From Pocillopora damicornis (Eukaryota): a stretch of 64,000 bases of DNA. Shown piece by piece: positions 28,133 through 31,100 of this stretch. Numbering within the stretch: the stretch's first letter is position 1; every line of letters begins with the position of its first letter. The translations under genes were made by a program, and so were the position numbers. The notes under the pieces are model-generated. The model had not been told where the DNA came from. It saw nothing but the letters and a program-made list of their open reading frames with translations, and did not search any database. The stretch spans positions 1 through 64,000 of the forward strand of contig NW_020846320.1 in the NCBI RefSeq assembly GCF_003704095.1, given 5' to 3'.

Positions 28133-31100
28133 TCAATTTTTCTCGTTTTCTCCGGGATTGGCTCCTGGTTTATCCTGATCGGCCGTTCCGCTCTCATCTG
28201 GTTTCATAGCTGGGAAAAATAGTACCTCCTACAACAAACAGAACAACAGTGCAATTAAAATAAACAAGTTACTTTAACTGATGTTGCTCATTCTGTAGTA
28301 TAGCAGGTTTGAACGATGCTAAAAAAAAGTTAAAATAATAAAAAATAATGAGAATAAAAAGAAAATATGTAGCCAGTGTTTCAAGGAGAGGCAACAATTC
28401 TCAATCAAGGTGCGCCAAGCAGGGGAGTAGGGGCCCCAACAGCATTTGTTTATGGAGGGGAGGGCCCCAAGAGCATGTTTTTGGGGAAAGGAGCATCCCA
28501 AGGGCAATTTTTTTTTTAATGGGAGGGGGAGAGTCTCGAAAAGCGTTTTTGCGAAATTAAAGAAAACTTTGAGCTGTTTTCCTACGGTTTTCAATTTTTT
28601 ACTGGGCTGGGAAGGAGGGTAACGTNNNNNNNNNNNNNNNNNNNNNNNNNNNNNNNNNNNNNNNNNNNNNNNNNNNTTTAGTTCCAGAGTGAGATGACAC
28701 CAGAAGTAGGGTATCAAAATTAAAGATGGAAAAAGAAAAGGCAAAATAAACAAAATAAAACAAACCTTGATGTTATTTGAATCCGTAAGGAACATTGTGA
28801 GTCTGTCTATTCCCATACCCCAACCAGCTGTGGGTGGCAGGCCATACTCAAGAGCTGTGCAAAAGTTTTCATCCACGAACATTGCCTCATCATCACCAGC
28901 GTCTTTATCCTACAGGAACAAAATTAATTTAAGCAACTAAGGTGGACACAACTCAGCTAGACTTTCTAAAAGTGTTGTATAGTGAAAGGATCAATATTAA
29001 GTCCAATCAAATTCCCAACAGCATTTTTTCTCAGGAAAGTGTAATATTCTCACTTTTTCCTTTCTTTAAGCCTAGTAAAATGTGCTGACAGGCCAGCACA
29101 ACTCCTGTCAGACATTAAGTGTAATATGAACAATTTTCTCCCAGTTGCCCATATGTAAACAAAAAAAAAAGAGGCATGGCTGATGAGGATCCTTTAAGGT
29201 AGTTTTTTAAAATGTACAGAGAAATCATCGGCTCCTTGTGTTATTTTCTTTTATTTGGAAAGAAGTTGTGATTACTTTATTTGACGACCCAGTTTTTAAA
29301 ACGTCACCATTAAAGATGCCCATCTTCTGCACTTGTGTGTTGAGTTCACCTCCCAACTAGAAGATAAGTCTCAGACATTCAAGGCACAATGGGAAAATTT
29401 CCTATATGTCTCCAAGGCATGAAACAGTTTATGTCCATTACAAAGAACATGCTGTGATGAACTTGGAAATTACTTTGACCTCACATGATTTAGTTGACAA
29501 TCATTGCCATTAGGCTATGATACATGCCCAAGTAAGGTTGGAGTTATACATAATTACACAATCAAAAAATATCGCAATGGTAAAATAGTTTGAAAAAATA
29601 GTGATTTGACTTTCTCAACCTTCCCTATATAGAGCAATTTTCAATCGAGTGTTGGAAGTCAATACATGATTCCTTTGGTTTTGCTTACTTCACTCTGTGA
29701 TTGATCCAGGCAGTGTGGTTGGTTTTACTTCAAGTTCTCATTGGCTCTTAACCCCTTAACTTCCAAGATCTCATTAGTAATTCTCCTTACTGTCTTCCAT
29801 ACAGTTCTTGTGATGTTAGTTTGGAGAATTTGGTGTTGGATCAACTTGTGGTCCCCTAATTGATATTTCTCTTTATTCTCATCACTAGTCTGCTCAAAAT
29901 TGTATGGATAATGTAGGGAGAAATTCTGTCTTGGTCACTCAAGGGAGTTAAAGGGTTAAAGGTATGTTCCTTTCTTTTGATTGGCCATTGTGATTACTTT
30001 GGTTTTGGTTTTACAACACTCCATCAGAAGCGCTCTGCTGAAGAAAAAGAATTTCTGTTTACCTTGGCTTGAAGCTGAAACATCTCCCTCTGTACAACAG
30101 GATCATTCAATTCTGTGTATGCATTGCACACCTCTTTACGGCAAACAAAGAGCTCAAATCTCTCAGAAAGGCCAGGGACAGATCTATGCCTGACCAGAAA
30201 ACAAGGAAATAATAAAATTATTAAAAATTTGTTACGTGGCTGGACAGCAGGGGAGAAGAAAAGCTTTGAGGTTGGGTCACCAATAATGCGTCCTGTTTAG
30301 TAATGTTTTTAGTTTTCTTCTAGTTGTAAAAATATGTTCCCATGAGCACCCAAGCCATCACTTACTCAGTGCTTTCAGGTGGCAGCAAATGAATGCAACA
30401 AGGATGATCCTATCACCTCACGTGAAATAGTCTGCAGTAACTGAACTACAGCAAACGTGCCTGGTGAGGTTTAAGAGAGGTCTTACACACAAGCCAAGTG
30501 GCCCAAACCCACCAACACTACCCTGGTTCTCAAGACATCATGTAACTAGGAGAGGACAGTCTATTGATCTACTCACTGAGTGTTTATAGAAATCCAAATA
30601 TCAAAATTGTTCTGATTTATGCATGTTACTTACCACTTTGAAAGTGGGCTCATTATTTGAGGATGATCAATGATGAAAGTTGGATTGACACAGGTCTCTT
30701 CCAGAAATTCACCAACAAGCTGTCAAATGAAAAAAGGAAGTAAGTCATTTGTAATGGTTCTAAGGCTGCAGAGTTCCAATATCTTTCAGCATCCTTATCC
30801 AACAACAAGCTAATTGTCTGAATATTGATTTGTTGCACTGTGCTAAGCTCTTTAGGACCAATAAAACATCTTGTAAAAAACGCTTGTCACAAGAGTCCTT
30901 AGTTTCTCACAAGTGCATGACTGAATGTTTTGTCTCCAAGGCATGAAACAGCTTAATTCCATCATAACGGAAGAGCTGTGATGAACTTGGAATTCAATCT
31001 AACCTCGCATGATTATGTTGACAGTCACAGCTGAGTAGCTATGTCACTTGCCCAGCAAGGTGTACTACCATAACATAACTTTACACGAAGCAGCAACATT

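Follow-up and report, generated by a model that had tools for sequence, protein, structure and literature searches.

We analysed a window of 64,000 nucleotides (nt) from the reef-building coral Pocillopora damicornis (NCBI RefSeq assembly GCF_003704095.1, contig NW_020846320.1, positions 1 to 64,000), part of which is occupied by KARS, the gene for lysyl-tRNA synthetase, on the minus strand. Two paralogous segments of about 136 nt, at 29404-29540 (copy A) and 30928-31063 (copy B), lie in the KARS introns 28909-30061 and 30720-31373, respectively, and have the anatomy of box H/ACA small nucleolar RNAs (snoRNAs). An initial annotation, made from the letters of the window, had pointed to this pair and predicted that each member guides pseudouridylation at two conserved sites of large-subunit (LSU) ribosomal RNA (rRNA). 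Both segments are present as it described; the RNAs, like KARS, are encoded on the minus strand, and all window coordinates given here refer to the plus strand. Runs of N near the locus (for example, 28626-28676) were kept unchanged.

The KARS locus and its intronic RNAs

The exon structure of KARS was read from splice joints in RNA contigs (Logan contigs of four runs from three studies, covering coral and marine samples, from polyadenylated RNA (polyA)/polymerase chain reaction (PCR) libraries). The joints appear as CT..AC on the plus strand, that is, GT..AG on the minus strand, and delimit exons at 28765-28908, 30062-30188, 30633-30719, 31374-31459, 31611-31795, 32104-32203, 32565-32628 and 33233-33349, and one from 33868. 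Copy A sits in intron a (28909-30061), downstream of which lies exon 28765-28908 (joint 28908/30062 and exon translation). Exon 30062-30188 separates introns a and b (joints 28908/30062 and 30188/30633 in 4/4 runs), and exon 30633-30719 separates intron b (30189-30632), home to a third paralogue described below, from intron c (30720-31373), which holds copy B (joints 30188/30633 and 30719/31374 in 4/4 runs); upstream of intron c lies exon 31374-31459 (joints 30719/31374 and 31459/31611). The exon translations, searched exon by exon rather than as a joined spliced protein, are those of lysyl-tRNA synthetase: they match PF00152-bearing fragments (that of exon 30062-30188 among them), some of which are so named by their sources. 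KARS, the proposed host gene, is expressed and is spliced on the same strand as the two copies in its introns.

Minimum free energy (MFE) folds of both copies give a hairpin, a hinge, a second hairpin and a tail, with fold energies at z = -3.0 and -3.3 relative to shuffled controls. A script confirmed every motif position and found the guide strings quoted in the initial annotation where they were given. In copy A, the hairpin 1 5′ guide (29525-29531) and 3′ guide (29484-29490) are followed by an H box, AAAGUA (29471-29476), the hairpin 2 5′ and 3′ guides (29456-29462 and 29417-29423) and an ACA (29407-29409), all on the minus strand. The same order holds in copy B, also on the minus strand, with hairpin 1 guides at 31049-31055 and 31008-31014, the hinge box AGAUUG at 30995-31000, hairpin 2 guides at 30980-30986 and 30941-30947, and the ACA at 30931-30933. 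In both copies the ACA follows the hairpin 2 stem and is itself followed by 3 nt to the predicted 3′ end. The copy A H box fits ANANNA, whereas that of copy B has G at the last position and is not a strict match, a departure that the initial annotation did not mention.

Identity between the two copies is 72-83% depending on the alignment. Lower stems, pockets and boxes are kept while the apical stems diverge, as had been observed, and the divergence is partly compensatory. A genome-wide search of the 234-megabase (Mb) assembly with copy A returned only copies A and B. Because these are the only close copies in the genome, the high-copy dispersed repeat that the initial annotation had held up as a danger to its proposal was rejected.

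RNA contigs covered intron a in 4/4 runs and introns b and c each in 3 or 4 of 4. The snoRNA-free introns 31796-32103 and 32204-32564 had no contig in any of the four runs, and two longer snoRNA-free introns were covered in one run only. Within the species complex that the 4 RNA runs sample, there were zero variants over copy A, versus 19 variant sites in the 698 nt of flanking intron covered (P ~0.03); copy B was likewise covered by contigs without variants. At 28882-29785, the contig over intron a begins at most 20 nt from the boundary with exon 28765-28908 in all four runs, starts inside that exon in three of them and reaches 29471 to 29785; since it runs from the exon border in all four runs, intron a is either retained or slowly spliced. 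Further into the same intron, at 29744-30060, summed RNA-contig depth rises to ~20,000-75,000, compared with a few hundred on the exons, with many odd joints and loose ends and only weak microRNA-precursor-like matches in Rfam (MIR1031, 22.9 bits). This part looks like a high-copy dispersed element transcribed elsewhere.

Guide pockets and their rRNA sites

In hairpin 2, the guide strand UUCAUGC is complementary to GCAUGAA and GUUCAUC to GAUGAAC, so that 14/14 pairs around an unpaired U-G are Watson-Crick; the match to GCAUGAA-[UG]-GAUGAAC originally proposed is therefore complete (7+7). The site proposed for hairpin 1, GUGAUU-[UC]-UGCCCAG, also pairs 7+7 base pairs (bp), here with 1-3 G.U pairs: the 3′ guide AAUCAUG meets UGUGAUU through five Watson-Crick and two G.U pairs, and the 5′ guide (U/C)UGGGCA meets UGCCCAG with one G.U pair in copy A and none in copy B, leaving U-C as the unpaired target dinucleotide. 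As predicted, the distance from the first base of the 3′ guide strand to the H or ACA box is exactly 14 nt in 4/4 pockets.

The two target uridines are 123 nt apart, the same distance as between yeast 2191 and 2314 and between human 3674 and 3797. In yeast, pseudouridines (Psi) 2191 and 2314 are guided by snR32 and snR86 (PMC5699541). Human 28S rRNA is 99% modified at Psi3674 and 100% at Psi(m)3797 (PMC6182160), and SNORA48, hosted by EIF4A1, is listed for 28S-3797 only (PMC6466398). In the literature searched, we found no guide curated for human 28S Psi3674. Both the spacing and the cited assignments thus agree with the correspondence first suggested, in which the hairpin 2 site is yeast Psi2314 (snR86) and human 3797 (SNORA48) and the hairpin 1 site is yeast Psi2191 (snR32).

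Exact and 1-2-mismatch pattern searches, together with a search with RF02543, located no intact 28S gene in the assembly. Contig C3123 yielded a deleted 28S pseudogene and contig C2415 a short fragment, and pairing was therefore checked on these two remnants of ribosomal DNA (rDNA) and on the Rfam consensus. The first target string is exact in the fragment (C2415:15217-15231), which is a ~45-nt piece of 28S joined to unrelated sequence (L005). The pseudogene (L009, C3123:14998-15959) retains both target regions; at the second site its 3′ arm, GAUGAAC, is intact and its 5′ arm has one change (GCUUGAA). It also has internal deletions and many transitions. Both target sites are present in the Rfam eukaryotic LSU consensus, which reads GAuUAAC at a variable spot. 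On the question, raised at the outset, of whether the coral's own 28S reads GAUGAAC or GAUUAAC, the pseudogene gives the former; an intact 28S copy was not found in the assembly.

Hairpin 1 also has, in its 3′ part, a conserved UGUCAAC that is complementary to GUUGAC, located in the rRNA immediately upstream of the target, and this was considered as an extra stretch of target pairing. We rejected it because its strands would run in the wrong order for one uninterrupted duplex and because these bases are paired within the RNA itself, at the foot of the upper stem.

A family of paralogues within KARS

KARS loci of other animals were taken from public assemblies using single-exon open reading frame (ORF) queries. 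For the first three relatives, contigs reached through exon 31611-31795 ended before the snoRNA introns; a query with exon 30062-30188 reached them. All loci whose exon proteins are 82-100% identical to those of the coral carry members of the family, in KARS introns and on the sense strand, so that the suggested search of related species was productive (L015, L019, L020, L021 and L023). From the exon identity we take these to be other anthozoans close to this coral. The member in L019, the only one seen on its 3.3-kilobase (kb) contig, occupies the intron equivalent to that of copy A. L020, L021 and L023 each have a copy in copy B's intron and a second in the intron after the equivalent of exon 28765-28908, and L015 and L016 have one in the intron before the equivalent of exon 31611-31795. 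That intron is empty in P. damicornis. Within KARS, individual introns have gained or lost copies; the L015 member lies at 5554-5695, and the corresponding coral intron (31796-32103) is short.

No family member was found in the KARS loci of the bivalve Mya arenaria (L022), of GCA_013339725.1 (L028, presumably a tick genome) or of two more distant animals (L024 and L025). The 10-kb KARS intron of M. arenaria contains a tandem repeat with a unit of ~2 kb. Three ACA-ended segments of that locus, one per repeat unit (14927-15055, 16971-17099 and 19011-19139) matched our covariance model at 11 bits and were rejected, as the coral guides are not shared.

This covariance model, R1, was built from ten family members, namely the two copies of this coral and those of L015, L019, L020, L021 and L023. 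The ten scored 133-157 bits, with copy A at 132.6 and copy B at 144.9. In the model-guided alignment, 93.5% of cells in paired positions are standard pairs, and sliding the partners by 1-3 columns lowers this to 27-46%; because the alignment had been fitted to the structure, the comparison is tilted somewhat in its favour. Five pairs change on both sides yet stay paired, such as an A-U/G-C exchange in the hairpin 1 lower stem and C-G/U-A and C-G/A-U exchanges in that of hairpin 2. The covariation score was reached by 0/500 shuffles, and RNAalifold independently gave the same fold. Although they form no pairs inside the RNA, the guide strands rank with its most conserved columns, and neither CUGGGCA nor UUUCAUGCC varies in any of the ten. 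The H box is AAAUUG in L019 and AAAUCA or AGACCA in the members other than this one and copies A and B, and L015 and L019 have AUA in place of ACA.

Scanning with R1 also recovered the third, diverged paralogue, at 30329-30474 (minus strand) in intron b, between copies A and B. The match is whole-length, at 29.9 bits (expected value (E) 3e-5 when all loci are searched and 7e-8 for the intron by itself), and hairpin 1 is also matched by nhmmer (E 3e-4). The parts that align to the model are hairpin 1, the hairpin 2 lower stem and the ACA; an H box, AUAGGA, is present. Since its hairpin 1 5′ guide has changed to CAGGCA and its hairpin 2 pocket differs and does not align, this paralogue has diverged and probably been retargeted to other sites. 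The description of A and B as a pair was thus right about their kinship and incomplete about their number, the coral having a family of three in consecutive introns.

The hairpin 2 5′ guide comes in two forms. UUCAUC is found in copies A and B and in the copies of copy B type in L020, L021 and L023; UUAAUC is found in L015, L019 and the second copies of L020, L021 and L023, each of which therefore has one copy of each type. The two forms are exact complements of the rRNA variants GAUGAAC and GAUUAAC. The former variant occurs in vertebrates and the latter in the majority of eukaryotes. The coral's only rDNA-derived sequence at this spot, the pseudogene, has G, matching copies A and B. This C/A difference in the guide mirroring a G/U difference in the rRNA is a small and testable evolutionary point. 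If the copies do track the 28S of each species, the family would offer a clear natural example of co-evolution between a snoRNA and the rRNA it targets. Under the same proposal the family would also preserve an ancestral state, in which the ancestor of SNORA48 guided both Psi3674 and Psi3797 and the vertebrate 5′ pocket was later lost or weakened. We offer this joint account of co-variation and ancestry tentatively and think it less likely than not.

Interpretation and comparison with known systems

We consider it probable, at about 0.8, that copies A and B are functional box H/ACA snoRNAs of intronic origin, released from KARS, assembled with dyskerin and each possessing two active LSU pockets. 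This estimate draws on sequence anatomy, spacing, complementarity, host splicing, conservation and covariation, all computed here, and from these we infer a stable RNA of ~135 nt and pseudouridylation of its targets. Under this reading, copies A and B would be released from the spliced KARS introns as stable RNAs of that length and would then be assembled with the dyskerin complex. Hairpin 2 would direct the uridine in GCAUGAA-U-GGAUGAAC, equivalent to yeast Psi2314 (snR86) and human Psi(m)3797 (SNORA48), and hairpin 1 would direct the uridine in UGUGAUU-U-CUGCCCAG, 123 nt upstream, equivalent to yeast Psi2191 (snR32) and human Psi3674. The RNAs would belong to a small family duplicated within one host gene, KARS, in stony corals and near relatives, with copies sitting in different introns according to species and with this coral keeping a third, presumably retargeted paralogue between the other two.

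Several observations weigh against this reading. Target pairing was checked on a pseudogene, a fragment and a consensus rather than on authentic coral rDNA, and no Rfam family reaches its gathering score within the span of the finding. Over copy A, the contig extends from within the downstream exon into the intron, and it therefore represents unspliced or retained intron and not processed snoRNA; contigs from polyA/PCR libraries cannot show RNA ends, strand or level. The last position of the H box is G in copy B and in L019. The hairpin 1 pocket is irregular, with 1-4 unpaired bases below the upper stem and use of G.U pairs, and in the copies of L020, L021 and L023 the 3′ guide pairs less strongly (5 bp or 4 bp).

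The irregular pocket and the short 3′ guides of those relatives would suit a different arrangement, in which hairpin 2 is the only active guide and hairpin 1 is kept for assembly of the small nucleolar ribonucleoprotein (snoRNP), its likeness to a guide for the Psi2191/Psi3674 site being a relic or too weak to act. The SNORA48 consensus points the same way, having a similar but imperfect 5′ pocket in an RNA to which reviews assign 28S-3797 alone. However, the hairpin 1 5′ guide is invariant throughout the family though unpaired within the RNA, both copies place the hairpin 1 pocket exactly 14 nt from the H box, L015 and L019 have a perfect AAUCAC as their 3′ guide, and total hairpin 1 pairing is at least 11 bp in all members. 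Loss of the hairpin 1 activity is therefore, in our view, improbable.

The final G of AGAUUG, where the last A of ANANNA is absent, and the failure of copy B to match any Rfam H/ACA family raise the further question of whether one copy, with B the likelier candidate, is a duplicate in decay that has stopped accumulating. Against this, copy B keeps both guides, both stems and the ACA, and its differences from copy A are compensatory pairs, not random decay. The same final G occurs in L019, where the family member is the sole one seen, and the copies in copy B's intron are well conserved in three relatives, in addition to the variant-free RNA contigs over copy B itself. Decay of copy B is thus an unlikely explanation.

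That the segments are instead conserved structured intron elements with another role, for example in the control of KARS splicing, and only resemble H/ACA RNAs might be read from the retention of the snoRNA-bearing introns in RNA contigs, but is highly improbable, because neither chance nor a splicing element would be expected to yield four exactly spaced pockets with bipartite complementarity to two known conserved pseudouridine sites, and the location of copies in different introns across species argues against a position-specific splicing role.

Taking copies A and B as predicted double-guide snoRNAs, the observation is confirmed, and they are, as far as sequence comparison can establish, a new and well-supported example of a well-known kind of RNA. 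Cnidarian snoRNAs are barely annotated, and our literature searches found no catalogue of them; the present work adds for a reef-building coral a conserved H/ACA family with both targets assigned by prediction, a usable covariance model and a concrete prediction of two pseudouridines in coral 28S. We know of no report of KARS as a snoRNA host, and by the evidence of its introns it is a new, predicted multi-snoRNA host gene in the coral lineage.

Among known RNAs, vertebrate SNORA48 (ACA48) is similar in being a two-hairpin H/ACA snoRNA of ~135 nt, with which copy A aligns end to end. Its 3′ hairpin pocket, UUCAUC/UUCAUGC, serves the same 28S uridine (human 3797) as is predicted for coral hairpin 2. 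Against the Rfam model (RF00554, gathering score 50 bits), copy A scored 29.1 bits across the full model (E 0.004 in 3.5 kb, 0.06 genome-wide) and was the best SNORA48 candidate scored genome-wide; copy B and the L020 copy (4500-4760) gave no SNORA48 match at E up to 10. The Rfam check called for at the outset thus returned a full-length match for one copy, below the cut-off, and none for the other, and the copies were not filed in RF00554 for these reasons. The only gathering-level Rfam match in the window is a U4 spliceosomal small nuclear RNA gene at 21141-21279 on the plus strand (127 bits, gathering score 46).

The SNORA48 consensus 5′ pocket is also near that of the coral (CUGGGUA versus CUGGGCA, and AUCAG versus AUCAU) and would pair 7 + 4 with the Psi3674 site; it differs in having two 3′-strand mismatches to this site, which the coral RNAs pair fully. 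The host differs as well, being EIF4A1 in vertebrates and KARS in the coral. Common descent of the coral RNAs and SNORA48 is plausible from these likenesses, and the closeness of the 5′ pockets hints that the double arrangement may be old.

Yeast snR86 (25S Psi2314) and snR32 (25S Psi2191) act on the same two uridines, 123 nt apart, as two separate RNAs, of which snR86 is ~1 kb long. The genes for both are independently transcribed, whereas the coral copies are intronic. In 28500-32000 neither the snR32 nor the snR86 family of Rfam gave a match at E up to 10, and the only H/ACA family matched besides SNORA48 was plant snoR83 (18.7 bits). One coral RNA does carry both of the pockets that yeast splits between snR32 and snR86, as was first proposed, each pairing 7+7. 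The accompanying suggestion that such an arrangement is undescribed is not supported, and the arrangement is an ordinary one: a catalogue of 190 canonical human H/ACA snoRNAs counts 89 as double guides (PMC4914119), and fungal guides, that of snR86 included, move between hairpins and between RNAs (PMC5824354). Understanding of the H/ACA guide mechanism is unchanged by this example, double guides, neighbouring-intron paralogues and cross-phylum reshuffling of guides all being established. In its layout, finally, the coral locus resembles intronic multi-snoRNA host genes, with one snoRNA in each of several consecutive introns of a housekeeping translation gene and paralogues that have been duplicated within the gene.

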